A stretch of DNA of 64,000 nucleotides from Orbicella franksi (GCA_964199315.1 OZ116703.1:1178001-1242000), one strand, 5' to 3'; numbered from the stretch's first letter, positions 5,298-45,385 are shown. Translations and numbers: made by a program. The notes: a model not told the origin generated them from the letters alone.

Positions 5298-5959
5298 GCG
5301 ATTTCTCGCCTTTCAAATTTAGAACTGAGATAGTTTGGAGCCGACCCGTGCAGAGACCTGTAAACTATCGTAGCTCTTTGAATTTGCTACTGCCAAGCTA
5401 GATTTTTCCACCCTAGAAGTTTGAACAGGTGACCAGCGTCTACGTCATAGTTTGAGTAGGTCAAAACATGGGCTGCTCTACTTTGTAGCTATTGTAGATA
5501 ATAAATATGATATGTTAGGCCACGGTTCCAGACAGAAACTATGATACGGATCTCCGTTGCCATTCCGTCCTCCACGCGATCAGCACGCCATTTTACAGTG
5601 AAATAATCAACAAACTTTACCCTCGCAAATCCATTATTTATGAAACAAAAAATCTATGAAAGGTTGTCGAACCAAGTACGCATACTTTCTACTCTGCAAC
5701 AGAGTCAAGGGAATAATATTCTTTGTAAGCGCCACTTATTAACTAAAACCGGCGAACACCCTGGAACTTTCCAGCGGATTCAAAAGGATTTCAAGTGCCT
5801 TTGTTGTGTTTGGAGAAAGCCGTTGTCTTAAAATATCACTTATATAACGATTATAAATAAAATTAAAGTTATGGGAACAGAATAACTTGAATTCTGTCGC
5901 GCCGATTCGGGGGATCCGAAAGTATATTGTAATGGTATCCGTACGATGGCCCAGAAGGT

Positions 5960-6240
5960 TCACAGTTCAGTTGTGAATTTTCACAGTTCAGTTGTGATTT
6001 TTCACAGTTCAGTTGTGAATTTTCACAGTTCAGTTGTGATTTTTGAAACAGTTCAGTTGTGATTTTTCACAGTTCAGTTGTGATTTTTGAAACAGTTCAG
6101 TTGTGATTTTTCACAGTTCAGTTGTGATTTTTCACAGTTCAGTTGTGATTTTTGAAACAGTTCAGTTGTGATTTTTCACAGTTCAGTTGTGATTTTTTGA
6201 AACAGTTCAGTTGTGATTTTTGAAAAACGTTCAGTTGTGA
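5960..6240 (+). repeat. Left subterminal array, 13 units of 21/23 bp (core GTTCAGTTGTGA)
   Basis: Units tttttCACAGTTCAGTTGTGA and tttttGAAACAGTTCAGTTGTGA counted directly. Confidence 0.95.
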
Positions 6241-6410
6241 TTCTCCGTACAGTTCAATTCTGACCTTTTGGAACAAAAGCTCCGCCCTTGGCACTTCATT
6301 CATCATATCCGGGCTTCTACGTCTAGAAAAGGCGGGAGTTTTCGAACTTAGCATAACAGCCATCTTTGAGACGTGGTTATATTTAACGGTGCTCTAGAAG
6401 AAGTTACAAA

Positions 6411-7622
6411 ATGCCGCTACCAGTTTATTCACCATGTATGAATGTGAATGGTGTTTTAGAGGATGACCAGTTGGAATTGATATCGAGCTATTTTAAACAG
6501 GGATACAGCAACTTGGAAATGCTGGAATTTTTAAAACTTCACGGAATAACGATAAGTATATCAACGCTGAAAAGACGACTTCGAACCTTAGGCTTGTCAA
6601 GACGTCCCGCGAATATGCCTCTTGATGAGCTAAAGGGGATCATAGAGAGAGAGCTCGGTGGCAGTGGCTGCTTCGTAGGCTACCGCAGGATATGGGCCAG
6701 ACTGAGAAGGAAAGGATATATGGTAAAGAGAATAACAGTCATGAAACTTTTAAGAGAGCTGGATCCAGAGGGAGTCGAGAGCAGAAAAAGGAAGAGACTT
6801 CGCCGAAGAATATACCATGCAAAAGGGCCCAACTTTGTCTGGCACATCGATGGCTATGACAAACTGAAACCTTATGGATTCTGTGTGCATGGAGCCATCG
6901 ATGGATTTTCAAGGAGGCTAATTTGGCTCGAGGTTGGTCCCACAAATAACAACCCTGAAGTTATCACTAAATTTTACCTTGATGCTGTAAAACAAATCGG
7001 TGGTTTACCGAGAAAAGTGAGATCAGACGACGGAACTGAGAACAGCATGGTTGCTGCAGTACATACATTTCTGAGGTCGAGCCACAGTGACGAGGATGCA
7101 GGTCTTGGGTGTTTTCTCACTGGCAGGTCCACAGCAAATCAGAGGATTGAAGCCTATTGGTCACATCTAGCTAAGGATGGTCCTGGTTGGTGGATTAATT
7201 TTTTTAAAGATCTGCGTGACTTGGGTCTATTTATTGACTCAGATCCAGTTCATGTTGACTGCATTCGATTTTGCTTCATGTCTATTCTAAGAAATGAGCT
7301 ACATCAAGTTGCGGAATTGTGGAATCAACACAGAATATCGTCAAGCAAATTTGGAAACAGCAGTGGTCCTCGGGGACGACCTGATTGCATGTTTTTTCTA
7401 CCTCACCTTTACAATACAGATGACTATACAACGGATGTAGACGAAGATGACCTTCAGGAGTTCTATGATCACTCCACAATGTGCCCGCCTGACTACAGTG
7501 AGGATTTCAAGGAATTTGCTCTGACTATTATGAATGAACATGACTTTCCAGAGCCACACGATGTTAGCTCTGCTCTTGATCTCTATATGAGACTCCTCAA
7601 AGAGGTGGAAAAGTTAACATAA
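6411..7622 (+). CDS. DDE transposase, integrase-core / IS3-like, 403 aa
   Basis: N-terminal HTH-like region (ISISTLKRRLRTLGL; GYRRIWARLRR). Catalytic motifs WHID147G, RSD206DGTEN and NQRIE247; GAIDGFSR strand. Intronless, no stops. Confidence 0.92.
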   Translation: MPLPVYSPCMNVNGVLEDDQLELISSYFKQGYSNLEMLEFLKLHGITISISTLKRRLRTLGLSRRPANMPLDELKGIIERELGGSGCFVGYRRIWARLRRKGYMVKRITVMKLLRELDPEGVESRKRKRLRRRIYHAKGPNFVWHIDGYDKLKPYGFCVHGAIDGFSRRLIWLEVGPTNNNPEVITKFYLDAVKQIGGLPRKVRSDDGTENSMVAAVHTFLRSSHSDEDAGLGCFLTGRSTANQRIEAYWSHLAKDGPGWWINFFKDLRDLGLFIDSDPVHVDCIRFCFMSILRNELHQVAELWNQHRISSSKFGNSSGPRGRPDCMFFLPHLYNTDDYTTDVDEDDLQEFYDHSTMCPPDYSEDFKEFALTIMNEHDFPEPHDVSSALDLYMRLLKEVEKLT

Positions 7623-8603
7623 TTTTTCTCAAAGCATATCCTTCGAACGTGTTCTTCCACAGTTTTGTAACCAAAAGCACGAGCTATTGCCATATTTCAA
7701 ATTGCACCTGTATGTATGAACATTGATTTTCATTACCCCACCCTCTCACTGACAATGTAGAGTCTTTAATGGGATATCTCAGAAGGGAAGACAAGGCAAC
7801 ATCAAAAATTGTCTTCCATCTTACGCTGCAGGGATGGTATTTGATACACTTTTTTAAACTGAGACCTAGATGTGTTTAGTGTCGTGGTTTTCACAAAAAC
7901 AAGAAGAAAACCAATACTAGTAAAATAATCTTCTAGCAGTTTGCCTGGTCTTTAAGCAGCCAACCTGTAATAAGCACTGGGGGGAAATGAGGACACAAAT
8001 TCTATATAATAATAACCATTTATTTAGCAAATGACAAGTGTGTTTTTGTCTACATGTAAGCCACTCTAAATGTTAAGAACCAGAAACGCTAAATACGTAC
8101 ATAACTGGGTTGGTGTGTGAACTGGAATTGACAAACACTAGAACTCAAACACTTATTATGTCAACAACTTAAAGTAAACTTTGACAATTAATTAAACAAA
8201 TTGTCTGGGATCTTAACAAAATGTTGAGTGCATGCTACTTTCCCTAGCCTGAAATCTCAGCATTTTAAAATTTTTCTTGCACAGTCACCTCCTCCCAAGA
8301 CCTCTTATGGTCTACCCTGAAATCAGAACTTCATACCTAAAATACAACAGACTAACACAACATTCTGCCCAGCTTGAAAACACGGCTGACACAGACCTCT
8401 GGTTCTGAGGCTGCCTTAGTTAAAACTACAACAGTACATAGTTGAGAACACACAAAAATAATGGAGATTTTAGGTCATTTCAGACACCAATTTTGTGCAT
8501 TCCAATTAAATAGCCTGTTATTTACAGGGCATGATTCAACCCTTCGACAGTTAGTTTGTGACAGAAAAACATCGATCAAAAACCTAGGCCAGTAGAGTTT
8601 CTT

Positions 8604-10562
8604 TCATATAATATCCATTTCCCAGTTGTCCCGATTAAGAATGTTCATGAAGTCTTCCCTTAATTCCACAAAGTTAGCATATGTGGATGGAATTTCCGAA
8701 AGGGGTCCACAGGTGTGGGCAATGGGTCTTACACTCAAGCCCTCGCACTTAATGAAAGTAACTTCTATCTTCTTGTCAATCATAATATCCATAGCTGTTG
8801 TAAATCGCAAAAATTGTAGGAGTTTTGGCATCTCCAGACCTCTTACAAATCGCTGCAAAAATTTAAATGCATCTCTCTCTCCTTCACTTTGTGGATTTGA
8901 GGTGAGACAAGATAGCACCTTTTTCGTTGTAGCTTTAAGACTATCATAGAAGCCCTCAACGGCTGAAATAGTTTGGAACTGGGGATACTGCTTCAACTGC
9001 TGTACAAAAGGTTGCAAAGATGAAATCATGAGATGTGGTTTCTGAACTAGTTCCTGCTTGGAAATTTCAAGAATGACTTGGCTAAGGTTTTCAATGGTAA
9101 CCACCCTTCTACACTTGAACCTTTCAAGAAAATCAGTAAATTCATCTTCATCATCTGGAAGCTGATTCTTCCTCATAATATCTACAATGAACTCTTCCTC
9201 TACTGGGGATAGGTATTTTGTAAATGAATCAACAAACATGGAATCTGGAACTTGGTTGCCAAAGAGGCAGTAGCATAAAAAAGCTTTTGACAAAAAGGTG
9301 GGAAAATAGGAGACAGACACAAACCCTTTAACTAAAATTCTCCCCACAGCCTCCCACTCCTCAACAAAGTGGTCATGTCTAACAAAGGGAACCCTTTCTC
9401 TCTCTCCTATGGTCATGGAGATGGAAAATTCACTCCAGAATAAAGTGTACACTTCACAAATTACCCCAACACCCACACCTTGTTCAAACTCTCCCTTTTC
9501 ATTAATCACTTTAAAATCAATATTACAGTTCATTACATTTGGGTCTTTAAAATGTTCAATCAATTCAGTTCTTATGCATGATCTGTGAACTGTGAGAACT
9601 CTCTCTGGAAGATCTCTTGATGAAGAGGGACATGGAGAATCCTGCTCTACAGAGCCTTCATCACGACTACAATTCTCTTCATTTGTAAGCCTTGGGTAAC
9701 TGGTTTCATCAGCCACATTGCTATGCGATCCTTCTGCCTCGATTTCAGCCACACCATTTGAAAGAAGTGCTACCCGCCTAGATCTTATTTCATCCATAGT
9801 TAGTAAAACTGGGTTTTCTGGTGTTTCTGGGGTTTCTGTAGTACATGAATTCCCCCCATCAGCGATCCTAGAAAACTCATATTCTCTGTTCTGCTCACAT
9901 CGAATGCATTCTTCACCTTCCAAATACGTACAGCTACATACTGAACAAACAACGTGCTTACCAGCACCTGATGCTACCTGCGAAGTATTCAGGTTGATTG
10001 ACCGTTCAAAATTTTCCTCCTCTGCTTCAAGTTGTGGAAAGAATGTGTCTTGGTGCTGTGATCTTAGATAGAGGTAAGTTGTCGACGGATAGAGACCATT
10101 TTCCTTTAAATAACTTTCAATAGTTCCTTCACCAGGAAATCGAATAATGGCCGTTTGGGTTGTGTCGCAGATATCTAGGAGCATGTCGTCAACAGAGCCA
10201 GCGAAAGCACTTTTCCCGTCAGGGAAAAACAAAGTAGTGGCTTTTTGCTTAAGTTCTACAACTGTGGGAGGTTCCGACGCAGTATAAGCAACGAACCGGT
10301 TTCCGCCACCGTTCTTCTGACGAACTGGAACAAAAACTTCTGACTTCTTGTCGTAATGAATCCAGCGAACTTGGATTCGATGTTCTTTATCGGTCTTTCT
10401 TTTCTTCCCTCTTGACTGACCTCTGATGCGGTCGAGCAATCCAGACAGTCGGCTTACTGTTCGTTGGTTTGGTTCACTGGTCGCTGCTTTAGAACTCGTA
10501 GAGGCAGATTCACCCTGACGTCTTATTTCCTCTCGGACAGTCTGCCTTATTATAGCATCCAT
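8604..10562 (-). CDS. HECT-domain E3 ubiquitin ligase-like protein, 652 aa (transposon ORF2)
   Basis: HECT N-lobe start LTVHRSCIRTELIEHF...GEFEQGVGVGVICEVYTLFW; C-lobe LLQFLRFTTA...RPIAHTC618GPLSEIPSTY with Cys 35 residues from the C-terminus. Upstream CxxC-x9-CxxC cluster. Lies inside the TIRs. Confidence 0.85.
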   Translation of the reverse strand: MDAIIRQTVREEIRRQGESASTSSKAATSEPNQRTVSRLSGLLDRIRGQSRGKKRKTDKEHRIQVRWIHYDKKSEVFVPVRQKNGGGNRFVAYTASEPPTVVELKQKATTLFFPDGKSAFAGSVDDMLLDICDTTQTAIIRFPGEGTIESYLKENGLYPSTTYLYLRSQHQDTFFPQLEAEEENFERSINLNTSQVASGAGKHVVCSVCSCTYLEGEECIRCEQNREYEFSRIADGGNSCTTETPETPENPVLLTMDEIRSRRVALLSNGVAEIEAEGSHSNVADETSYPRLTNEENCSRDEGSVEQDSPCPSSSRDLPERVLTVHRSCIRTELIEHFKDPNVMNCNIDFKVINEKGEFEQGVGVGVICEVYTLFWSEFSISMTIGERERVPFVRHDHFVEEWEAVGRILVKGFVSVSYFPTFLSKAFLCYCLFGNQVPDSMFVDSFTKYLSPVEEEFIVDIMRKNQLPDDEDEFTDFLERFKCRRVVTIENLSQVILEISKQELVQKPHLMISSLQPFVQQLKQYPQFQTISAVEGFYDSLKATTKKVLSCLTSNPQSEGERDAFKFLQRFVRGLEMPKLLQFLRFTTAMDIMIDKKIEVTFIKCEGLSVRPIAHTCGPLSEIPSTYANFVELREDFMNILNRDNWEMDII

Positions 10563-10692
10563 CGTTTAAAAACGCCAAGCACTGCAAAACACAAACTAGA
10601 GGACAACTTTGCCGCCTTCCAAAATGGCGGGAGAAAAACACTCGCCTGTCTCAGTTCCCGTATGTTAAGTTCCAGTCTTTTTCGTCCAACCG

Positions 10693-11020
10693 AAAAATCA
10701 CAACTGAACTGTGAAAAATCACAACTGAACTGTTTCAAAATCACAACTGAACTGTGAAAAATCACAACTGAACTGTTTCAAAAATCACAACTGAACTGTT
10801 TCAAAATCACAACTGAACTGTGAAAAATCACAACTGAACTGTTTCAAAAATCACAACTGAACTGTGAAAAATCACAACTGAACTGTTTCAAAAATCACAA
10901 CTGAACTGTGAAAAATCACAACTGAACTGTTTCAAAAATCACAACTGAACTGTGAAAAATCACAACTGAACTGTTTCAAAAATCACAACTGAACTGTGAA
11001 AATTCACAACTGAACTGTGA
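10693..11020 (-). repeat. Right subterminal array, 15 units of 21/23 bp, inverted relative to the left array
   Basis: TCACAACTGAAC units counted directly. Confidence 0.95.
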
Positions 11021-13435
11021 GCCTTCTGGGCCATCGTATATCCGACATTACTAACATATTTTCAAGCATAAGGCGCAGTTTTCATCGTTCAGTTTTCTTC
11101 GATTCACGTACGTAGAGAATCTTGTTTAGGGTAGTCGAATCATCCATAACTCTCGACATCAGGTTTAGTGGATTTCTTTTTATTCGGGTCTGTTATGCCA
11201 CGATGAATGCGAAAATTAATAAGCAAATAAAATATTGGTACGATCAGAAGTTGTATAAATGTTTCAGATCTTTACAAAAAATCGAAAATTAACTTACTAA
11301 CTTTGTTTGTAAAGCAATTCACATCGATGGTCAGTTGATCTTTTGATTCCCTAGTTCGATTTTAAGCGAGCTATGAAAATCGTATAAAAACGGTGTTTTT
11401 TCAAACGCATGACAGACACCGCTTGGTATCCCGATTTACTATTTGGGAATTTTTACTGCTGTGACTGGTGAAACAAGATATGAACCCTAAAATTCAATAA
11501 ACAAATGAAAAACCTTGCAGTTATGAGTGACCGGATCAAAGTCTAAGTTGCCTTCATCACAAACACGTGAAAAGGATATTTCCGTCATAATTTGTAGAGG
11601 TCGTTCGGGCCTTCATATTCTAGAATATCCTTCTAACTCAGTGTATCAATCAACATTGCCGGCATATATATGGGTAATAAAGAAAAATAACAATCATTTT
11701 GTCTACATCAATGAAAAACAATTGCGTTCTTACCTTCACTCACAGTAAGGACATGGACAAGGGAGAGGAGAAAAAATGCGATCACTGAATCCATCTCCGC
11801 TGCGAATTTTGCCGCTAATGTGCCTGCTGTAACCGGCTACAAAATGTTATTTTTCAGGGCAAAGCACAGAAGAAGCCTCTTAGCATTCGCTTACGACCAC
11901 AGACGCAGGATTGCAGACTCTTTCTTTCGACAACTCGCGCGAGCACGTGAAGTTCTCGCGGTCCTTGCAAAGCCCCGACACTCAGAAAAGTGAAAAAAAT
12001 GCCAAGCTTTTAGAATCCTTTTTCGCGTCTAGTCCAAAATGAACTAGGCGAGAAATCATCTAAGGAAATCCACAGAAAACTTAGGTAGCTCCTCCAGTTG
12101 CTGTTGCCAACCACAACCCGGCGGAGACCGGAATTCCGTTTTATGATAAAAATATGCACGTGTTTTTCCAAGAATTGATTGCAGAACGAAAAATAATGGT
12201 TTCGAGTTTCCAGCCACGTGCTGCTCGTGGGTGTCTAGCGAGATCACACCGCAGGCGATGACTACATAGGGGTTCGGAAATAATCCGCTTGGCTAGGATA
12301 ATTTGATAATACTCTTAATAGTGTTAAAACTGAGAAGTAGAATCCATAACAACCCCTCAATACTACCGCTAAAAATAAATGACCTTGCCTCCATGGGGTA
12401 CTGAACTAGATCACGGAAGAAATTCCCCCGACTGAATACCGTACATGATTTGCTATTTATTTTTTTCTATTTAATTCAATTTTTAGTGCCATCGAAAATG
12501 TATTGTAAGTATTGTAGAGGGTTGCAGGTTTATTAGCTTTGGCTATTTAATGCAAACCCTCTTTAAATAAAGTCTTTACCTTTTCTGTGGTAACTGCGGT
12601 AACTGTGAGAAATTGGAGACATATTAAGGCAGTACTTTTCCTCATTCAGTCCTAATTTTCTCCATTCTTCTACACGGAGATTATCAAAACCCTTGATTTT
12701 ATTCTACCTCAGCTTAAATAGACTTCTTCTGAAGCTAATTATATCATAATTTGATGTTAAGTACATCAACACAGGTTTCTCAAGTTGAAGATTTTGCTTT
12801 GGCATTACCATTTACTATTCATGGAAAAGAAAATTAAGATGTTGCTAATTTACTACTGGAATGTCAGCTTTCAACGAGCTCAGGGTGTTGTCGAACATTC
12901 GATCTTAAGTGTTTTGGCTTGTCTATTAAGATTCGAGAAAATAACAATTGTGTTTGCCTGTTTGTTTAACAAAATTCCTAAACACTCTTTGAGAAACATC
13001 TACCTTCAGTTACTTCCAGTTGCCCCAAAATTGTCAATGATCATTGAAAGTCTCCAATCCGAATTGACCGCGATTTTTTCATATGCTGTAAAATTGTACA
13101 TGTCTTCAAATTCGGAGTAATGGATACGCACTTATCAGGAACACAATATTTATGTGTGATTTACAGGCGAGACTTTGGCCAAGTTCTCACATTCCGATCA
13201 TATCACCAGACTTCTAACACAATAACCATGAATTAACATAACATAATAAACAAGAACGAAAAATGCTAACTATTGTATACGCGTAAACTTTTAAAAATCG
13301 ATTTGTCTAGCTCCATTTGAGAAAAATGTGACCCTAAAATGATACGCCGTCGGATCTCATAGCAAAAAACAAAAACTCTCTAAAAAATAACCAATAAAAA
13401 TTAATTATTTTCCGAACAGAAAAAATTGAGGTATG

Positions 13436-32819: not shown

Positions 32820-35800
32820 TTAGTCATCGTTGCCATGGGAACGTGAGGGCGTCCCCTCTCCTGGGTTGTCGTAATATGTTTCTACAACCACAACCTCCTG
32901 ATAGTCTTCTTCCTTTTGGGTTGTGTGCAGTTCTTGGCCGACCGCATCGCCACTTTCTACATCTTTTTCTTTTGGTGCAGCAATTAGTTCTTCATAAGCA
33001 TTCGTTTCTGTCGCTGATTCTCCATCTCCTTCTTTGCGCCTTTCTTTTTGTGGCAGTGTATCGATGTAAATGGAGTTGTGTAGAACCCTTGTCGTTTCCC
33101 TACCTCGCTTCCTTCTCCTCTGTAAAATGTCATTAAACGTAGAAACGTGATTAATTTATTATTTGCAATTTCTCTTTATCGCACAGCCACGAGCGTAACC
33201 CGACCTTAAAGCCTGATTTTGTCAAGGGCGGATTTATATTTAAATCAGTTCAAGTTACTTAAAAAAAGAAGCTGCCATGGTGAATAGGTTTCTACAGTAA
33301 GGCGAACTTAGACTCCTGACATTTGGAACGTTGATCTGCTCTCCCTATACTATTAAACATTTGAAGTGTCTTAAAAACGATGTTTCAGATAGAGATGTAT
33401 ATTTGAGAGTGGATTCTTGTGCTGGGCGTGTTTCTAATTCTATACTTAAACACAAGCTACAGATAGGATTCTTATACTCACCATCAGTATGAAAGTCAAG
33501 ACAATAATCAGAACTATTAAAGCCAGGCAGGCGAGAACTATCAGTGCAACGGCCCATCCAGGCAGTGAATCACTGCTATCTTCTTCCTCTTCCTGTTTCA
33601 CACTCGATTGCGAAAATATAACGTTTTTAACAATAAGTCCATCAAACATTTCTGTCCCATTGACGGACTCCAAACGGGATTTTAGTTCTGCTTCATTAGG
33701 GGAAGCAGCATCGCTAAAGGCAACTGAATAATTGGCAATGACACTACCGGTACTAAAACTGATTACAACAACGTAAAGGAAATTAGGATAGCCCTGAAAT
33801 AGAGCTGTCAGTGCCCCTTCTACTCTTTTCTTCAGCTCCCGAAATTCACGGCTACTGGTGTCTTCATAAGCCTCAATGAATATGAGGTTTATAAATGTGA
33901 CACTCGCATCGACAATCACGGTCGATGGATCCGTTGTAGTCTCACTTGGTGGCAGAGTTGATACCTCAGTAGGCGGATCCGTCGTTGGCTGAGTTGGCGG
34001 ATGAGATGCAACATCTGTGGTTGGATCAGTGGTAGGGTCAGTGATTGGATCAGTGGTTGGATTAGTTGTCGAATCTGGGCTTGGATCAGTGGTTGGATCA
34101 GTGGTTGGAACAGTTGTTGGATCAGTGGTTGGATCAGCTGTTGTATCAGTTGTTGGATCAGTTGTTGGATCAGTGGTTGTATCAGTGGTTGGATCAGTGG
34201 TTGGATCAGTGGTTGGATCAGTTGTTGGATCAGTTGTTGGATCAGTGGTTGGAACAGTAGTTGGATCAGTTGTTGGATCAGTTGTTGGATCAGTTGTTGG
34301 ATCAGTTGTTGGATCAGTGGTTGGAACAGTAGTTGGATCAGTTGTTGGATCAGTTGTTGGATCAGTTGTTGGATCAGTTGTTGGATCAGTTGTTGGATCA
34401 GTTGTTGGATCAGTTGTTGTATCAGTTGTTGGATCAGTTGTTGGATCAGTTGTTGGATCAGTTGTTGGATCAGTTGTTGGATCAGTGGTTGGATCAGTGG
34501 TTGGATCAGTTGTTGGATCAGTTGTTGGATCAGTTGTTGGATCAGTGGTTGGATCAGTGGTTGGATCAGTTGTTGGATCAGTTGTTGGATCAGTGGTTGC
34601 ATCAGTGGTTGGAACAGTTCTTGGATCAGTTGTTGGATCAGTTGTTAGATCAGTGGTTGGATCAGTTGTTGGATCAGTGGTTGGAACAGTTGTTGGATCA
34701 GTTGTTGGATCAATTGTTGTATCAGTGGTTGGATCAGTGGTTGGATCAGTTGTTGGATCAGTTGTTGGATCAGTTGTTGGATCAGTGGTTGGATCAGTTG
34801 TTGGATCAGTGGTTGGATCAGTTGTTGGGTCAGTGGTTGGATCAGTTGTAGGATCAGTTGTAGGATCAGTTGTTGGATCAGTTGTTGGATCAGTTGTTGG
34901 ATCAGTTGTTGGATCAGTTGTTGTATCAGTTGTTGGATCAGTTGTTGGATCAGTTGTTGTATCAGTGGTTGGATCAGTTGTTGGATCAGTTGTTGGATCA
35001 GTGGTTGGATCAGTTGTTGTATCAGTTGTTGGATCAGTTGTTGGATCAGTGGTTGGATCAGTTGTTGGATCAGTTGTTGGATCAGTGGTTGGAACAGTAG
35101 TTGGATCAGTTGTTGGATCAGTTGTTGGATCAGTTGTTGGATCAGTTGTTGGATCAGTGGTTGGAACAGTAGTTGGATCAGTTGTTGGATCAGTTGTTGG
35201 ATCAGTTGTTGGATCAGTTGTTGGATCAGTTGTTGGATCAGTTGTTGGATCAGTTGTTGTATCAGTTGTTGGATCAGTTGTTGGATCAGTTGTTGGATCA
35301 GTTGTTGGATCAGTTGTTGGATCAGTGGTTGGATCAGTTGTAGGATCAGTTGTTGGATCAGTTGTTGGATCAGTTGTTGGATCAGTGGTTGGATCAGTGG
35401 TTGGATCAGTTGTTGGATCAGTTGTTGGATCAGTTGTTGGATCAGTGGTTGCATCAGTGGTTGGAACAGTTCTTGGATCAGTTGTTGGATCAGTTGTTGG
35501 ATCAGTTGTTAGATCAGTGGTTGGATCAGTTGTTGGATCAGTGGTTGGAACAGTTGTTGGAACAGTTGTTGGATCAATTGTTGTATCAGTGGTTGGATCA
35601 GTGGTTGGATCAGTTGTTGGATCAGTTGTTGGATCAGTTGTTGGATCAGTGGTTGGATCAGTTGTTGGATCAGTGGTTGGATCAGTTGTTGGATCAGTGG
35701 TTGGATCAGTTGTAGGATCAGTTGTAGGATCAGTTGTTGGATCAGTTGTTGGATCAGTTGTTGGATCAGTTGTTGGATCAGTTGTTGTATCAGTTGTTGG

Positions 35801-38800
35801 ATCAGTTGTTGGATCAGTTGTTGTATCAGTGGTTGGATCAGTTGTTGGATCAGTTGTTGGATCAGTTGTTGGATCAGTTGTTGTATCAGTTGTTGGATCA
35901 GTTGTTGGATCAGTTGTTGTATCAGTGGTTGGATCAGTTGTTGGATCAGTTGTTGGATCAGTGGTTGGATCAGTTGTTGTATCAGTTGTTGGATCAGTTG
36001 TTGGATCAGTGGTTGGATCAGTTGTTGTATCAGTTGTTGTATCAGTTGTTGGATCAGTTGTTGGATCAGTTGTTGGATCAGTTGTTGGATCAGTTGTTGG
36101 ATCAGTTGTTGGATCAGTGGTTGGAACAGTAGTTGGATCAGTTGTTGGATCAGTTGTTGGATCAGTTGTTGGATCAGTTGTTGGATCAGTTGTTGGATCA
36201 GTTGTTGGATCAGTTGTTGTATCAGTTGTTGGATCAGTTGTTGGATCAGTTGTTGGATCAGTTGTTGGATCAGTTGTTGGATCAGTGGTTGGATCAGTTG
36301 TAGGATCAGTTGTTGGATCAGTTGTTGGATCAGTTGTTGGATCAGTGGTTGGATCAGTGGTTGGATCAGTTGTTGGATCAGTTGTTGGATCAGTTGTTGG
36401 ATCAGTGGTTGCATCAGTGGTTGGAACAGTTCTTGGATCAGTTGTTGGATCAGTTGTTGGATCAGTTGTTAGATCAGTGGTTGGATCAGTTGTTGGATCA
36501 GTGGTTGGAACAGTTGTTGGAACAGTTGTTGGATCAATTGTTGTATCAGTGGTTGGATCAGTGGTTGGATCAGTTGTTGGATCAGTTGTTGGATCAGTTG
36601 TTGGATCAGTGGTTGGATCAGTTGTTGGATCAGTGGTTGGATCAGTTGTTGGATCAGTGGTTGGATCAGTTGTAGGATCAGTTGTAGGATCAGTTGTTGG
36701 ATCAGTTGTTGGATCAGTTGTTGGATCAGTTGTTGGATCAGTTGTTGTATCAGTTGTTGGATCAGTTGTTGGATCAGTTGTTGTATCAGTGGTTGTATCA
36801 GTTGTTGGATCAGTTGTTGGATCAGTGGTTGGATCAGTTGTTGTATCAGTTGTTGGATCAGTTGTTGGATCAGTGGTTGGATCAGTTGTTGGATCAGTTG
36901 TTGTATCAGTGGTTGGATCAGTTGTTGTATCAGTTGTTGTATCAGTTGTTGGATCAGTTGTTGGATCAGTTGTTGGATGAGTTGTTGGATGAGTTGTTGG
37001 ATGAGTTGTTGGATCAGTTGTTGAATCAGTTGTTGGATCAGTGGTTGGATCAGTGGTTGGAACAGTGGTTGGATCAGTGGTTGGATCAGTTGTTGGATCA
37101 GTTGTTGGATCAGTGGTTGGATCAGTGGTTGGAACAGTTGTTGGATCAGTGGTTGGATCAGTTCTTGTATCAGTTGTTGGATCAGTTGTTGGATCAGTTG
37201 TTGTATCAGTGGTTGGATCAGTGGTTGGATCAGTGGTTGGATCAGTTGTTGGATCAGTTGTTGGATCAGTTGTTGGATCAGTAGTTGGATCAGTTGTTGG
37301 ATCAGTTGTTGGAACAGTTGTTGGATCAGTGGTTGGATCAGTTGTTGGATCAGTTGTTGTATCAGTGGTTGGATCAGTTGTTGTATCAGTTGTTGTATCA
37401 GTTGTTGGATCAGTTGTTGGATCAGTTGTTGGATCAGTTGTTGGATCAGTGGTTGGATCAGTTGTTGGATCAGTTGTTGGATCAGTTGTTGGATCAGTTG
37501 TTGCATCAGTGGTTGGATCAGTGGTTGGAACAGTTCTTGGATCAGTTGTTGGATCAGTTGTTGGATCAGTGGTTGGATCAGTGGTTGGATCAGTGGTTGG
37601 ATCAGTTGTTGGATCAGTTGTTGGATCAGTTGTTGGATTAGTGGTTAGATCAGTTGTTGGATCAGTTGTTGGATCAGTTGTTGGATCAGTTGTTGGAACA
37701 GTTGTTGGATCAGTTGTTGTATCAGTGGTTGGATCAGTTGTTGGATCAGTTGTTGGATCAGTGGTTGGATCAGTTGTTGGATCAGTTGTTGGATCAGTTG
37801 TTGGATCAGTTGTTGGATCAGTTGTTGTATCAGTGGTTGGATCAGTGGTTGGATCAGTTGTTGGATCAGTTGTTGGATCAGTTGTTGGATCAGTTGTTGG
37901 ATCAGTTGTTGGAACAGTTGTTGGATCAGTTGTTGTATCAGTGGTTGGATCAGTGGTTGGATCAGTTGTTGGATCAGTTGTTAGATCAGTGGTTGGATCA
38001 GTGGTTGGATCAGTTGTTGGATCAGTTGTTGGATGAGTTGTTGGATGAGTTGTTGGATCAGTGGTTGGATCAGTTGTTGGATCAGTTGTTGGATCAGTTG
38101 TTGTATCAGTGGTTGGATCAGTTGTTGTATCAGTTGTTGGATCAGTTGTTGGATCAGTTGTTGGATCAGTGGTTGGATCAGTTGTTGGATCAGTTGTTGT
38201 ATCAGTTGTTGGATCAGTGGTTGTATCAGTTGTTGGATCAGTTGTTGGATCAGTTGTTGGATCAATTGTTGGATCAGTTGTTGGATCAGTTGTTGGATCA
38301 GTTGTTAGATCAGTTGTTGGATCAGTGGTTGGATCAGTTGTTGGATCAGTTGTTGGATCAGTTGTTGGATCAGTTGTATGATCAGTTGTTGGATCAGTTG
38401 TGGGATCAGTGGTTGGATCGGTTTTTGGATCAGTTGTTCTATCAGTTGTTGGATGAGTGGTTGTATCAGTTGTTGGATCAGTTGTTGGATCAGTGGTTGT
38501 ATCAGTTGTTGGATCAGTTGTATGATCAGTTGTTGGATCAGTTGTTGGATCAGTTGTTGGATGAGTTGTTGTATCAGTTGTTGGATCAGTTGTTGGATCA
38601 GTTGTTAGATGAGTTGTTGGATCAGTTGGTGGATCAGTGGTTGGATCAGTGGTTGGAACAGTTGTTGGATCAGTTGTTGGATCAGTTGTTGGATCAGTTG
38701 TTGGATCAGTTGTATGATCAGTTGTTGGATCAGTTGTTGGATCAGTTGGTGGATCAGTTGTTGGATGCGTTGTTGGATCAGTTGTTGGATCAGTTGTTGG

Positions 38801-41692
38801 ATCAGTTGTTGTATCAGTTGTTGGATCAGTTGTTGGATCAGTGGTTGGATCAGTTGTTGGATCAGTTGTAGGATCAGTTGTTGGATCAGTTGTTGGATCA
38901 GTTGTTGGATCAGTTGTTGGATCAGTTGTTGGATGAGTTGTTGGATGAGTTGTTGGATCAGTTGTTGGATCAGTTGTTGAATCAGTTGTTGGATCAGTGG
39001 TTGGATCAGTGGTTGGAACAGTGGTTGGATCAGTTGTTGGATCAGTTGTTGTATCAGTGGTTGGATCAGATGTTGGATCAGTGGTTGGAACAGTTGTTGG
39101 ATCTTTGGTTGGATCAGTGGCTAGCTCAGTTGTTGGTTCAGTGGTTGGATGAGTTGTTGGATCTGTGGTTGGGTCAGTGGTTAGGTCAGTGGTTGAATCA
39201 CTTGTTGGTTTAGTTGTGGGGTCAGTTGTTGGATGTGTGGTTAAATCAGTTGTTGGATCAATGGTTGGTTCAGTTGTTGTTTCAGGTGTTGGATATGTAG
39301 TTGGTTCAGTGGTTCGAGCAGTTATTAGATCAGTTGTGGGATCAGTTGTTTGATCAGTTGCTGGTTCAGCTGTTGGATATCCCTTGGGTGAACCTAAATA
39401 TGAATGTAGGGTGAAATTAAATTGTGTCACATCAGTAAAGTACTGTGTCTCCCTGACTGTAGAAGGCAGCTCTTTGATGCTTGAGGTGATATATCAAACT
39501 CGAGAGACTGTGTTTGACGATATTGACGAGTACGAAAATACGACGCGTAGCGGGGTATTTTTGACGACTTTCGAGGTGCTTCTTATTGTGGTCAAACACT
39601 GTCTTGAGTGTTTTATATATCCTCTCACTCGAAAATATAACTAAGGAGATAACGGAGAAATAAAATCGTCAAAAGCGATGCTAAATAAGATCAGATATCC
39701 AAACACCGTCACGGTCATGATTTCCTTTGTTTAAACTTGATGAATTTTTAACGAGCTCGAGTAGGGGTGTTCCAGATAACGTCTCGTTAGTTAACAGATT
39801 TAGAAGGATATTTGTTAGTGTTGGTTGCTGTGGCAACATTAAAAGTTTTCAATAGTATTGTATGGACGACGTTCTGCTGAAAAACTAGTTTAAGGAGGCT
39901 ATACCTTGAAGGATGAATACCACCACTGTTTAACAAGTGATGCTACAATTATGGTGTTCTACAAATTGCCAATGGCTAGTAAACTAGTTGCGGTCATCCT
40001 TTTAATTTGACAGGTGACCATAGCAACAATATTACCTGCTAAAAACACCCTCAATTTTAGCTTTAAGCGCTTATTGCTCAAAAACGAGCTCGGTGACCCC
40101 CATTTTTTATTATCGAATTGTAATAATCACGATAAGTTTAACTTAACTTTAAAAAATTCTGCGGAGTAGGTTCAGAGCCGCCTTAAATTTTCAAAAATGT
40201 AAGTTGGCTCTGAACTCACTCCACAGAGGTGCAAAAATTTGCATCTTATCATGCTTATTACAATTTGATATTAAAGAATGTGGGTCACCGAGATGGTTTT
40301 TGAGTTATAAGCGCTTAAAGCTAAGATTAAGGGTGTTTTTAGCAAGTCATATTGTTTCTATCGCAGCCTATTGTCCCACAAAATTGACAGCCACATTTTC
40401 AAGAATGATTGGGCAGTTTTTGATACCATGAATTTGGCATCAACCGATATAGAGTGGCTATAATGACCCATCAAAATCTAAGTCTTGGAAAATACTGGAA
40501 ACTCTTTCGAGCCACCTTAAATTAAGTGTTCTCTACGAGATAACAATACTTTTTGGGAGTTTCGAAGAAGCTCACTTTTGCCTTACACAGACAGGCACCA
40601 TCAATTTATGAGATGATTAGCTGATTATAGAATGCTCACATATAGTTTTGTAAGTTTTCGTATAGGCTTGACAAAAACCATATGGAAATTAGCAGCCCTC
40701 ACTGAGTACTTTTATTTATTTGCACTAAGGTCAAAATACGGTAGTTCCTTTGGTTTTCTTATGTAAACCTATTATGGCGTCACAGAGATTGAACTTTGTT
40801 TGTGGCTCCCACCAGTTGTAATCTTTGATCGTCATTATTAATTTCTCTTCTACAGAAAATAAGTTCTGATAAAAAAAAGTCTTAAATCATCATATTAACT
40901 CTTCCGGATCGTGCCGAAATTACAGGCCTTGTTTTACATCATGTACTCGCCCTATGGCCCAATCCTGTGTGGCTCCATTTTTCTTTTCTTTGCAGTTACC
41001 TAATGGTAGTCTAAACGGGCATTTTACTTAGGTGTAGCCAGGAAATGTTCTTTACTCCCATGAACCGGCATGGTATGTCTCATTCCGTTTATTTTCTTGA
41101 CTCTTTTTATCAATTTGAATTATCATTATTGTTTTTTAATTGTAAGGAGACTCCCGCAGAGAATTATGTCTGTTCTGAAAGTGACTGTTACAATGTTTCC
41201 TTAACAAAATTTTAAAACTTAAAAACTTTTAGTGCTCGTAGAAGTAAAAGGAAATCAAATGGAACGTAGCTTTTAACATGATGTTAGTATGGATCATGAT
41301 ACACAGTCCAGAAAAACAGCAAGTTCCATTCTAACAACCCTAAGTTAGGCTGTTTTTAAGTAAGTTCAAATCAAGTGTTAAGGTTAGATGACAAGAGAAG
41401 TGCTTGCTTCAATTGCCTAGTAACAAACTTAGGCAAAAATTTAGGTAGTCGAGTCGCCTTAAATCACGCTAAATCCTGCAAAATGACCCCGAAAATGTAA
41501 ATTTTAAAGCAACGATTCCATGATCTTTTTTGCCAGAAGATTAGTTATTACTTAATATTTTAATTCTGAGAGAAACTAACAGAATATTTGTGCTAAAAAC
41601 TTGAGCAGAAACAATAGAAACTTACCTTGTGTCGCGTTTAAGCTGCTCCAAAATATCCCTAGCCAGAAAAGAATGACTAAACCTTCAGCCAT
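32820..41692 (-). CDS. Mucin A: type I membrane SEA-domain mucin with TDPT repeats, about 2,092 aa (exons 41626-41692, 33482-39393, 32820-33119)
   Basis: Signal exon MAEGLVILFWLGIFWSSLNATQ-G|gtaagt (phase 1). A 5,912-bp exon holds (TDPT)n, SEA (FSTGSVIA) and TM (WAVALIVLACLALIVLIIVLTFILM|gtgagt). Tail exon RRRKR...GNDD*. Phases are consistent; total 6,279 nt. Confidence 0.88.
34010..39370 (-). repeat. 12-bp coding minisatellite (ACTGATCCAACA), about 445 units
   Basis: Directly visible; variants DTT, VPT, HPT and DLT are all in frame. Confidence 0.97.
39894..40516. mobile_element. Two adjacent, oppositely oriented TTAA-flanked MITEs (Kolobok-like, inferred): 39894-40182 and about 40203-40516
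   Basis: TTAA|GGAGGCT...AGCCGCC|TTAA; second copy ends AGCCACC|TTAA; shared internal segment aaaaacaccc..ttagctttaagcgctta in inverted orientation. Confidence 0.55.
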
Positions 41693-43665: not shown

Positions 43666-45385
43666 TAGACTTAATTTAAAGAGGGTAGCTCTAAAATAGT
43701 ATAAAAATACTAACAAACCAGTGGCCCTCTAAAAATTATGTACCATACGGATGCTAAAACTATGGCATAATTATGAGATAATATAACGAATAAAAATACA
43801 ATAGATAAGAGATAAAATCAATTTAAAATACAAAAAGTATAACTAAATCACAGAATAAAATGATTTAAAAGCTGCTGTTCTTCAAAAATTTTTTTCCAAA
43901 GAGAGTTCCAAAAGAATTAAGCGACGCTATTTTCCGCATTGATAGCGGTAAGCTGTTCCAGGCTTGACAGGCAGTCAGAGTAAATGTTCTTCCTCCTTCA
44001 GTTTTACGTTTGATAACAGGGCGAACAATATTGAAGTTGGCATACCTAGTCTGCCGTGAATGAGTGTCGCTAGTAAGCTTAAGTAAACTTTTAAGATAGG
44101 TTGGTACATGTCCCTGTAAACGCTTGTATATAATACAGCATTTAGTTAGTTTAACCTGTTCGAAAAATGGTATCCAGTTTAGTTTATTGAACAGTTTGAC
44201 GGAGGAGGCTTGACAATCGGCGTCTGGAATAACTCTAGCAGCCCTCTTCTGCAACTTTAGAACACGGTTAAGACAATGTTTATCACAGCTCGTCCAAACC
44301 ACATTTACATAATCAATTACCGGTCTTATCATAGTGTTATAGAAAATAAGTCGATGTTTTAGAGGTAGACAATATTTAATTCTCTTTAAAATGCCTATCC
44401 GCTGCGAGAGCTTTTTACTCAATTTCTTCATATGAGGGATAAATGTTAGTTCTTGGTCGATTTCTAGTCCCAAAAGCTTTGCAGAACGAACATTCTCCAG
44501 TTGTTTTTCATTAACAACTACAGCAAGGTCATGGTTAATTCTGGTAGAAAGTCGCTTGCCAGTAATGGTAAGCACTTTTGTCTTGCTCTCATTGAGAGGA
44601 AGTTTATTAGCTGTTGCCCATTGGTCGACCTCGGAAATTGCTGTAGTCAGTGAACTTTGTAAAACACCAACGGAATCAAAGTTAGCAGCGGAGGTTAACG
44701 TCGTGTCTTCTGCGTATAGGTCAATTTGAGCCGAGCTCACATGTAGCGGAAGATCGTTAATAAAGGCGATGAAAAGCAAGGGAACCAGAATTGAGCCTTG
44801 AGGTACACCATGACGAACACAAGCAGTAGGGAATTCTATTTTACCCATAGATACCAACTGGCGCCTTTCATTCAGATATGATCGAAACCAGATTAACGAT
44901 TTGTTGTCAAGCCCATATGCTTGAAGTTTTTGCAATAGAATCGAGTGATCAACCACGTCGAAAACCTTGCAATAATCAATTAAAATCATACCACTCACGC
45001 GATCACTGTCAAGGTTGAACAGCAGTTCGTCGATAATTCCAATAAGAGCAGTTTCTGTACTGTGACGCTTGCGAAAACCAGACTGCTTAGAATAAATTAA
45101 CTTATTGACACACAAATAACTATAAAGTGAGTCGTGTACATGCCTCTCTATTACCTTGGAAAGTACTGGCAACACTGATATCGGACGATAGTTGTTTACG
45201 TTTTCTGGATCCCCACCTTTAAATAACGGAGTGACTTTTGCAGTCTTCCAGCGCTGAGGAAAAACTGATGTGACGAAGGAATAATTAATTAATTTAGCAA
45301 CGGACGGAGCAATAATAGGAGCTGCTAATTTCAGCATTCGCGCACTGATATTATCAATACCACTGGCTTTGTTTGATTATTATCT
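43630..45385 (-). mobile_element. 5'-truncated non-LTR retrotransposon, CR1/L2 group, degenerate RT
   Basis: ORF 43865-45337 with NYRPISVL, QSGFR, GVPQGSIL and YAED (normally YADD); 3' (TTAC)n tail at 43630-43664. Confidence 0.9.

Follow-up and report, generated by a model that had tools for sequence, protein, structure and literature searches.

A recently active IS3EU transposon in the coral Orbicella franksi pairs its transposase with a predicted HECT-fold protein

The DNA analysed here is a 64,000-nucleotide window of the Orbicella franksi genome (GCA_964199315.1, OZ116703.1:1178001-1242000), and all positions are counted from its first letter. The window contains a DNA transposon of 5,097 bp (5942-11038) with two genes, one for a DDE transposase (ORF1) and one for a protein with a predicted HECT fold (ORF2). 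An earlier reading of the sequence alone had proposed one insertion bounded by a perfect TATCCG duplication and near-perfect terminal inverted repeats (TIRs), and the coordinates bore this out. The 6-bp target-site duplication (TSD) was perfect (5936-5941 and 11039-11044), and the span between its two copies had TA..TA ends. The termini read TACGATGGCCCAGAAGG on the left and CCTTCTGGGCCATCGTA on the right, the right one being the reverse complement of the left string. In the window, the terminal 17-mer TACGATGGCCCAGAAGG had exactly two occurrences, inverted to each other, where 0.01 would be expected by chance. The inverted-repeat arms (5942-6002 and 10978-11038) were 61 nt each, with a complementarity of 98%. 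A chance origin of the TSD and the inverted repeats was ruled out by this expectation together with the eight independent duplications described below.

Inside both ends, a 21-bp subterminal unit was arrayed in about 13 copies on the left (5959-6242) and about 15 on the right (10692-11018), the two arrays being mutually inverted. These repeats are probably binding sites of the transposase. A scan for open reading frames (ORFs) confirmed the two intact, intronless frames of the sequence-only reading, arranged tail-to-tail: ORF1 at 6411-7622 on the plus strand (403 aa) and ORF2 at 8604-10562 on the minus strand (652 aa). The remaining ORFs of at least 80 aa in the element were short frames, two of which overlapped ORF2 while one overlapped the ORF2 start and extended into the right-end repeats. 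A scan for bacterial-type promoters and terminators gave background levels only, which is irrelevant for a eukaryote. The octamer GGCGGGAG, which resembles an E2F site, was found in the 5' region of each gene, both times on the plus strand, and may hint at cell-cycle-linked transcription. The features of the element are as follows.

5936-5941, no strand: left TSD copy, TATCCG (from the sequence; the empty site in four other runs has a single copy)
5942-6002, plus: left TIR, starting TACGATGG (61 nt, pairing with 10978-11038 at 98% complementarity; the 17-mer end has no occurrence besides the two termini)
5959-6242, plus: left subterminal array of the 21-bp unit TTCACAGTTCAGTTGTGATTT, in about 13 copies (repeat detection)
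6243-6410, plus: 5' region of the transposase gene, presumed promoter, with GGCGGGAG at about 6331-6338
6411-7622, plus: ORF1, DDE transposase, 403 aa (Pfam, NCBIfam, alignment of 23 homologues; protein 100% identical in 6 copies)
7623-8603, no strand: intergenic region with two convergent 3' untranslated regions (UTRs); the AATAAA of ORF2 lies at 8019-8024 on the minus strand (sequence, polyA reads)
8604-10562, minus: ORF2, 652 aa, with a KKRK motif, a ubiquitin-like domain, a zinc ribbon, a disordered linker and a HECT domain (sequence, models)
8607-9605, minus: predicted HECT domain, residues 320-652, with the Cys618 codon at 8709-8711 in AHTC (fold matches, profile, Cys conservation)
9897-9947, minus: Cys-rich, zinc-ribbon-like motif C-x2-C-x-C...C-x2-C, residues 206-222 (conserved Cys columns)
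10047-10391, minus: predicted ubiquitin-like (beta-grasp) domain, residues 58-172 (predicted structure, structural searches)
10563-10691, minus: 5' region of ORF2, presumed promoter, with GGCGGGAG at about 10626-10633
10692-11018, minus: right subterminal array of the 21-bp unit, in about 15 copies and in the orientation opposite to that of the left array (repeat detection)
10978-11038, minus: right TIR, finishing CCATCGTA (pairing of the 61-nt arms, 17-mer end)
11039-11044, no strand: right TSD copy, TATCCG (sequence, empty site)

The transposase was identified by profile searches. Its core (residues 134-312) matched the integrase-core family PF24764 (rva_4) with an E-value of 1.8e-34 and rve with 9.9e-06, as the sequence-only reading had anticipated, and residues 82-122 resembled the IS3-type helix-turn-helix HTH_21 (4e-04). 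The catalytic residues D147 (codon 6849-6851), D206 (7026-7028) and E247 (7149-7151) were invariant across 23 aligned homologues. Matches to the NCBIfam transposase models IS481 (6.8e-11) and IS3 (9.8e-10) fell far below the equivalog cut-offs of these models, as expected of a distant relative. No N-terminal zinc-finger family was matched in ORF1 by Pfam. Homologues of the transposase came from corals, a sea anemone, Hydractinia, an oyster and fish, the taxa named for GingerRoot/IS3EU elements. The closest named relatives of both proteins were from Stylophora pistillata (80-93% identity), and the runs that contain the element carry a coral label, both in keeping with a scleractinian host.

IS3EU/GingerRoot elements have been defined by TA..TA (TAY..RTA) ends, 6-bp TSDs, long inverted ends and an IS3/IS481-like DDE transposase lacking an HHCC finger, and they occur in corals, anemones and fish (PMC10045372, PMC6839031, PMC12730594). 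The present element has all of these features. Its TIR-bearing ends read TACGATGG..CCATCGTA, and those of a divergent family in the same genome, typified by locus L049, read TATGGGGCGCC..GGCGCCCCATA. The duplication was 6 bp long in eight copies, with a single TATCCG at the empty site and with GAAATG in the divergent family. The Pfam and NCBIfam matches and the invariant DDE residues identify an IS3/IS481-like transposase without the HHCC finger. By the published criteria of ends, duplication and transposase type, the element at 5942-11038 belongs to the IS3EU/GingerRoot superfamily, and the IS3EU-like identity first read from its sequence holds. It is a cut-and-paste transposon that is autonomous and was active recently. 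Elements of this kind have been recorded in corals, sea anemones and fish (PMC6839031; Kojima and Bao 2023, PMC10045372), and the present one resembles them in its TA..TA termini (TACGA..TCGTA here, TATGG..CCATA in the sister family), its 6-bp TSD, its long inverted ends and its transposase of about 400 aa with similarity to IS481/IS3 and no HHCC zinc finger. It differs from them in its HECT gene, which is not described for them in the accessible papers. What is new is the HECT partner, the element being otherwise an ordinary representative of its superfamily.

Searches of the 497-Mb assembly, in which the window lies on contig C6, located further copies. Seven copies were 99.78-100% identical over a 4,449-bp unique core, with a single gap found, in the copy on C3. 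ORF2 was open in seven genome copies at 99-100% identity, and the transposase was 100% identical in six of those. Two further copies were 97% identical and contained stop codons. Eight copies were flanked by eight different 6-bp duplications (TATCCG, TCCATC, AAAACG, GTTCCG, CTACAG, ACAAAC, TCTTGT and TATTTG). Full copies had common ends and lengths of 4986-5137 bp, set by the differing number of 21-bp units. The sequence-only reading had called for a genome-wide search for copies with both ORFs, the same TIRs and different TSDs, and had named confinement of ORF2 to this copy, or its rapid decay elsewhere, as grounds for dropping the idea. What was found is an ORF2 that is intact in seven near-identical copies, each with its own duplication, and under purifying selection. 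One sister copy (L036, G000:C6:28024700-28034699) was 5,402 bp long because a second left end lay 372 bp inside the outer one; its duplication TCTTGT belonged to the outer ends. An old copy (L037, G000:C10:26532400-26542399; 97% identical) had intact ends but no matching 6-bp duplication, which may reflect rearrangement or recombination between two copies.

The target site was compared between samples by aligning contigs of four other public runs to 5450-11400. All four runs had contigs with a precise joint from 5935 to 11039, skipping 5,103 bases (the element plus one TATCCG) and sharing 6 letters; in two of the runs these contigs were 3.5-3.6 kb long, with zero mismatches on the aligned flanks. 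Since the exact unoccupied target site was found there, the insertion of the window is absent from these samples. An excision footprint was considered as the cause of the 5.1-kb difference and rejected, the empty site being one clean TATCCG, as if never occupied. In the same runs, element ends were joined to the flanks of other reference copies (C1, C15, C12), and further element-flank joints matched none of the genome copies compared. The depth ratio of element to flank in other public runs was about 5-9. The empty sites, the joints to other flanks, the depth and the near-identical copies point to recent transposition in this species.

The window copy differed from contigs of six runs (X1, X3, X15, X16, X19 and X20) at positions 8137, 8698, 9955, 9998 and 10258; four of these five differences were in ORF2 and none in the transposase, numbers too small for significance. 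One copy differed from the window at only four letters of ORF2, all of them non-synonymous.

ORF2 was not a peculiarity of this insertion. A convergent pair of transposase and HECT genes adjoined at 15 or more loci of the genome, with identities to the window proteins of 30%-85% for the transposase and 23%-86% for the HECT protein. The L049 family illustrates the depth of the association: its transposase was only 30% identical to that of the window, and the element was about 5.1 kb long, with TATGG..CCATA ends, the TSD GAAATG and subterminal repeats whose unit measured about 21 bp. Outside this genome, a tail-to-tail pair was present on an ENA contig from a coral-like assembly (ORF2 76%, transposase 85% identical), and the same convergent pair occurred in Hydractinia symbiolongicarpus and the plaice Pleuronectes platessa. 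In the octocoral Dendronephthya gigantea, both homologues carried consecutive gene numbers on one contig. No transposase was found within 6 kb of the Holothuria homologue of ORF2. The pairing in divergent families and other phyla confirms ORF2 as a regular gene of these elements. ORF2 is an integral, selected part of the element and not chance cargo. The plaice element (L042, GCA_947347685.1) was situated inside a protein-kinase gene model.

Selection was estimated from the ratio of non-synonymous to synonymous substitution rates (dN/dS). Against a 76%-identical relative (L045), the ratio was 0.235 for ORF2 and 0.11 for the transposase, so that the comparison of ORF2 across copies suggested with the original proposal returned purifying selection. 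Within ORF2 it was 0.155 for the HECT domain, 0.23 for the ubiquitin-like domain and 0.42 for the linker (aligned codons 175-315). Against the two dead 97% copies, the ratio was 0.45-0.96.

In one polyA RNA run (X24), the summed depth was about 2-12x over ORF2 and its 3' UTR versus 0-2x over the transposase. Positions 8160-8600 were covered and 7640-7987 had zero coverage, consistent with the minus-strand AATAAA at 8019-8024. Because the reads diverged by 1-3% from the window copy, they represent expression of family or sister copies and not of the window copy itself. The RNA contigs of X1 and X3 contained the whole 4.5-kb core in one contig; these were not counted as transcription, as DNA may be present in the libraries, and only the uneven profile of raw reads from X24 was used for that purpose. 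In runs X24 and X1, a right-end piece (10928-11038) was joined to unrelated sequence on both sides, with a right-hand flank common to the two runs. This suggests a solo terminal fragment that is transcribed inside another gene elsewhere in those samples.

The assignment of ORF2 to the HECT proteins was indirect. The C-terminal 353 residues had 82 relatives in corals, Exaiptasia, an octocoral, Hydractinia, a sea cucumber and fishes, many with a precomputed match to the Pfam HECT family PF00632. Among 21 aligned ORF2 homologues, 14 matched PF00632 at E ≤ 0.01 (best 4.8e-10), and those homologues matched ORF2 at 1e-49 to 1e-86. A profile built from the family alignment matched 13 chains of HECT ligases in the PDB, in their C-lobes, with weak E-values (from 0.017). 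In these matches the catalytic loop of AREL1 lay opposite the block RPIAHTCGP.LELPSTY, and AHTC was paired with the loops of HUWE1 and NEDD4L too. The presumed catalytic Cys618 stands 34 residues from the C-terminus in the motif AHTCGP; in HECT ligases the catalytic Cys occupies a conserved loop some 35 residues from the end. Of the 65 homologues that include a C-terminal region, at least 63 have this Cys, as do all ten paired loci, among them families of only 23-26% identity. The AHTCGP..LP.TY block was the most conserved stretch of the protein in the family alignment. The sixth residue from the end was conserved in the family as an aromatic residue or Leu.

The predicted structure agreed with this assignment, for which a bilobed C-terminal fold of about 350 aa is expected. 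In the AlphaFold model of ORF2, the per-residue confidence (pLDDT) was mostly 81-97 for residues 320-605 and about 90 for residues 58-172. When the model was compared with the PDB using Foldseek, the top 50 of 50 matches were HECT proteins (UBR5, HUWE1, NEDD4, E6AP, TRIP12 and others), with a best E-value of 4.6e-8, a probability of 1.00 and a template-modelling (TM) score by target of up to 0.50. The 30 rows listed for Swiss-Prot were likewise all HECT ligases. G2E3 from human, macaque, chicken and mouse took ranks 1-4 (5.8e-10 to 4e-8), ahead of the next protein at 1.2e-7, with a TM score of only 0.27-0.30 and an identity of 12-15%. G2E3 resembles ORF2 in having a C-terminal HECT domain in a protein of about 700 aa, and it was the best structural match among reviewed UniProt proteins. 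It is a host gene with N-terminal PHD/RING-like fingers, whereas ORF2 has a ubiquitin-like domain and a zinc ribbon in their place. Membership of ORF2 in the HECT proteins rests on transitive homology and fold, because PF00632 was not matched by ORF2 itself at E ≤ 0.1. The HECT identity claimed in the sequence-only reading is thus upheld by fold, profile, homologues and C618, and fails in its direct Pfam match. Judged from the homologues, the profile matches and the predicted fold, ORF2 is a HECT-fold protein with its predicted catalytic Cys at position 618.

The N-terminal half of ORF2 appears to hold a separate module. Residues 58-172, modelled alone, again reached a pLDDT of about 90. In an exhaustive structural search with this region, the best rows were nearly all ubiquitin-like or related beta-grasp folds or ubiquitin (Z 6.2-8.1), among them kindlin F0, USP11, Ddi2, Mpe1, the polycomb ULD, Rad23 and ISG15; Foldseek and ESM Atlas searches agreed. 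A ubiquitin-like fold is therefore probable on the strength of the models, although Z values of this size are common. The basic motif KKRK at residues 53-56 suggests nuclear localisation, and the protein is probably nuclear. The nearest ESM Atlas clusters to the module carried Zn_Ribbon_1, which serves as a lead only, and feature and shape searches of the Atlas for fusion partners of the domain returned only Zn_Ribbon_1 and generic ubiquitin-like folds.

In a library of 1.8 billion proteins, 1,685 cluster representatives matched a profile built from this ubiquitin-like domain (E ≤ 0.001), so the ORF2 family is very large. Its members are publicly named 'uncharacterized' or 'HECT domain-containing'. 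A word-based search with residues 57-174 retrieved close relatives only. Among the best 150 profile matches there were 61 long proteins, of which 15 had Pfam HECT, 3 Pkinase and 1 LRR; the listed ones mostly had HECT or no Pfam domain. The Pkinase cases may be gene-model fusions, given that the plaice element sits inside a kinase gene model. Weak structural matches of the module included SAM-domain proteins, a fungal alpha-kinase protein (E 1.7e-3, TM 0.35), a Puccinia protein and ubiquitin hydrolases. The alpha-kinase match is a lead to the possibility that the modelled module is a common adaptor of IS3EU accessory enzymes. A predicted complex of the transposase with ORF2 residues 55-240 scored 0.25, below the mark of 0.34, and counts neither way.

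Other transposons are known to carry genes that act on the host. ULP1 and OTU protease domains occur in Ginger1, MULE and Helitron elements, and the anti-silencer VANC keeps the plant element VANDAL21 transcribed; TET/JBP enzymes have been proposed to do likewise for fungal transposons. These cases are alike in that a transposon-borne accessory protein acts on host protein modification or silencing. They involve deconjugating proteases or a DNA-binding anti-silencer, whereas ORF2 would be a conjugating-type HECT E3 ligase. A viral counterpart is herpesvirus ICP0, an E3 of the RING type that remodels host nuclear factors. It likewise gives a genetic parasite its own E3, but it is a viral RING protein, while ORF2 is predicted to be of the HECT type and belongs to a cellular DNA transposon.

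The closest published parallel is found in fungi, where IS3EU elements encode an alpha-kinase and TET/JBP proteins (Kojima 2025, PMC12730594). They share with the coral element the superfamily, the 6-bp TSDs and ends of the form TAYGG..CCRTA, and the gene for their accessory enzyme lies opposite to the transposase (the alpha-kinase gene is convergent with it) and encodes a post-translational protein modifier. There the enzyme is an alpha-kinase with a TET/JBP gene in between; here it is a predicted HECT ligase with a ubiquitin-like domain. In the accessible literature, with Repbase and Dfam entries outside the search, no paper joined IS3EU with HECT, and none combined a HECT domain, a transposon-encoded protein and a ubiquitin ligase. 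The papers on GingerRoot, IS481EU, Hydractinia and the fungal TET elements do not mention a HECT partner. Prior description of an IS3EU-HECT element, the reservation attached to the original proposal, was thus not encountered in that literature, Repbase and Dfam aside. As far as we found, no description exists of a HECT E3 that regularly partners a transposase, and Repbase or Dfam may hold informal prior knowledge. The genome paper of a hadal sea cucumber reports 20 copies of G2E3 as an adaptive expansion (PMC9700323), and G2E3-like sequences have been taken as host genes or unclassified repeats in two papers (PMC9700323, PMC5638112). This expansion and these G2E3-like sequences may be HECT genes of transposons.

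Taken together, we favour an autonomous, active IS3EU element whose HECT ligase works, is needed for the element's own propagation and has its target preferably at the transposition step, a reading we consider fairly probable. The transposase would bind the TIRs and the 13-15 subterminal 21-bp repeats, cut at the TA ends and integrate with a 6-bp stagger. ORF2 would act as a nuclear HECT ligase: a host E2 would charge Cys618 with ubiquitin, and ORF2 would pass it to a target chosen by the N-terminal module of ubiquitin-like domain and zinc ribbon. The element would need this ligase activity for its own propagation. The favoured target would be the transposase (for its turnover) or the transpososome (for its removal), or else chromatin or repair factors at the ends. 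We lean towards a conserved target at the transposition step because ORF2 has been kept across very deep divergence under purifying selection; both observations fit a conserved cofactor at least as well as anti-silencing in an arms race.

Several observations weigh against this proposal. A sequence search with ORF2 against solved structures returned no HECT chain and one chance match (E 1.9), adding to the failed Pfam match. The catalytic loop (residues 609-626) was modelled with a pLDDT below 50. Many HECT ligases have a Phe four residues from the C-terminus, which several of them need for ubiquitin transfer; ORF2 ends in ...NWEMDII, so that its fourth-last residue is Met and its sixth-last Trp. 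Brooks and colleagues reportedly found in 2008 that the HECT domain of G2E3 lacks typical, classical HECT ligase activity in vitro. The library of run X24 looks unstranded, and its reads are 1-3% off the window copy. The two genes also have discordant histories. Among the 10 loci at which transposase and HECT protein were compared (including L046-L049, L026 and L028), one group had transposases 30% and HECT proteins 43-45% identical to those of the window, and another had transposases 44-47% and HECT proteins 23-26% identical. From these sequences, the HECT gene seems to have been exchanged between IS3EU lineages or acquired more than once, or the rates have been very unequal. If it was exchanged or re-acquired, the gene is more easily seen as an accessory than as part of a strictly essential core.

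Such exchangeability is what would be expected of an accessory weapon, and the main alternative, already raised in the sequence-only reading and regarded by us as unlikely yet worth serious attention, is that ORF2 marks small-RNA, DNA-methylation or heterochromatin factors for degradation so that the element stays transcribed, much as VANDAL21 does with the help of VANC. Fungal elements of the same superfamily carry TET/JBP dioxygenase genes (PMC12730594), which is in keeping with this idea. So are the separate promoter region of ORF2, its higher number of polyA reads compared with the transposase gene (in the one run with coverage), the nuclear localisation suggested by KKRK, and the faster evolution of the linker and N-terminal parts relative to the HECT domain, with a dN/dS of 0.42 at aligned codons 175-315. 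Yet there was no overall sign of positive selection, the ubiquitin-like domain being at 0.23, and the architecture has been kept from anthozoans to a hydrozoan and a fish, whereas counter-defence genes are usually lineage-restricted. The points raised above about the HECT domain itself bear on another explanation, in which a pseudo-enzyme or scaffold binds ubiquitin, an E2, DNA-bound transposase or chromatin without transferring ubiquitin, and its ubiquitin-like domain would dock to the proteasome or to ubiquitin receptors. A domain too divergent for a Pfam match, a catalytic loop of low model confidence, the missing Phe four residues from the C-terminus and a nearest structural relative that is said to be a non-classical ligase would all be explained. 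What it would leave unexplained is that at least 63 of 65 homologues, and families with 23-26% identity, retain the Cys within H-T-C. A most conserved stretch that coincides with AHTCGP..LP.TY is hard to explain without catalysis; we consider this scaffold improbable.

It is conceivable, too, that the element picked up a host HECT gene, or a retro-copy of such a gene, by accident and draws no benefit from it. DNA transposons do capture host fragments, and acquired fragments and Pack-MULEs are discussed in the GingerRoot paper (PMC6839031); ORF2 is intronless, and public annotation treats its homologues as ordinary host proteins. Against a chance passenger stand the same convergent pair in families with transposases only 30-50% identical and in three animal classes, a dN/dS of 0.235 between active lineages as opposed to 0.45-0.96 against dead copies, an ORF that is open in all seven young copies, and an N-domain family of 1,685 cluster representatives whose listed matches mostly have HECT or no Pfam domain. 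This explanation is close to refuted. Beyond the preferred reading, a broader and more speculative picture can be drawn: animal IS3EU elements would be an ancient two-gene system with HECT as the required partner, the N-terminal module would be an adaptor that has been fused to HECT in animals and to an alpha-kinase in fungi, the HECT domain of G2E3, a cell-cycle ligase of vertebrates, would be a domesticated relative or a donor, and the 'G2E3 expansions' reported for some animal genomes would be transposon copies. We doubt that all of these parts hold jointly.

Beyond the transposon, the window contains other long frames. A 490-aa ORF on the minus strand (43868-45337) encodes a reverse-transcriptase domain (RVT_1, E 9.7e-28) and belongs to a retroelement unrelated to the transposon. 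Also on the minus strand, a 1,994-aa open frame (33449-39430) has a SEA domain at its end (E 4.6e-10). Long ORFs of several other frames, on either strand, overlap this open frame, which has the look of a repetitive, mucin-like exon. For a 525-aa ORF on the plus strand (43-1620), Pfam matches were scattered and marginal, with no single stretch significant.

The cargo known from transposons comprises ubiquitin/SUMO proteases, DNA demethylases and DNA-binding anti-silencers, and a predicted HECT ligase as partner would, by our searches, add a new kind. The element is compact, intronless and recent, with a polymorphic insertion, two intact genes and a single Cys (C618) to address, which makes the need for the E3 tractable to test. 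In corals, hydrozoans, echinoderms and fish, hundreds of genes annotated as 'uncharacterized' or 'HECT domain-containing' probably belong to transposons, and what has been reported as adaptive expansion of G2E3-like genes may be amplification of transposons. For the reef-building coral itself, an active cut-and-paste element could be a source of insertional variation or could serve as a genetic tool.

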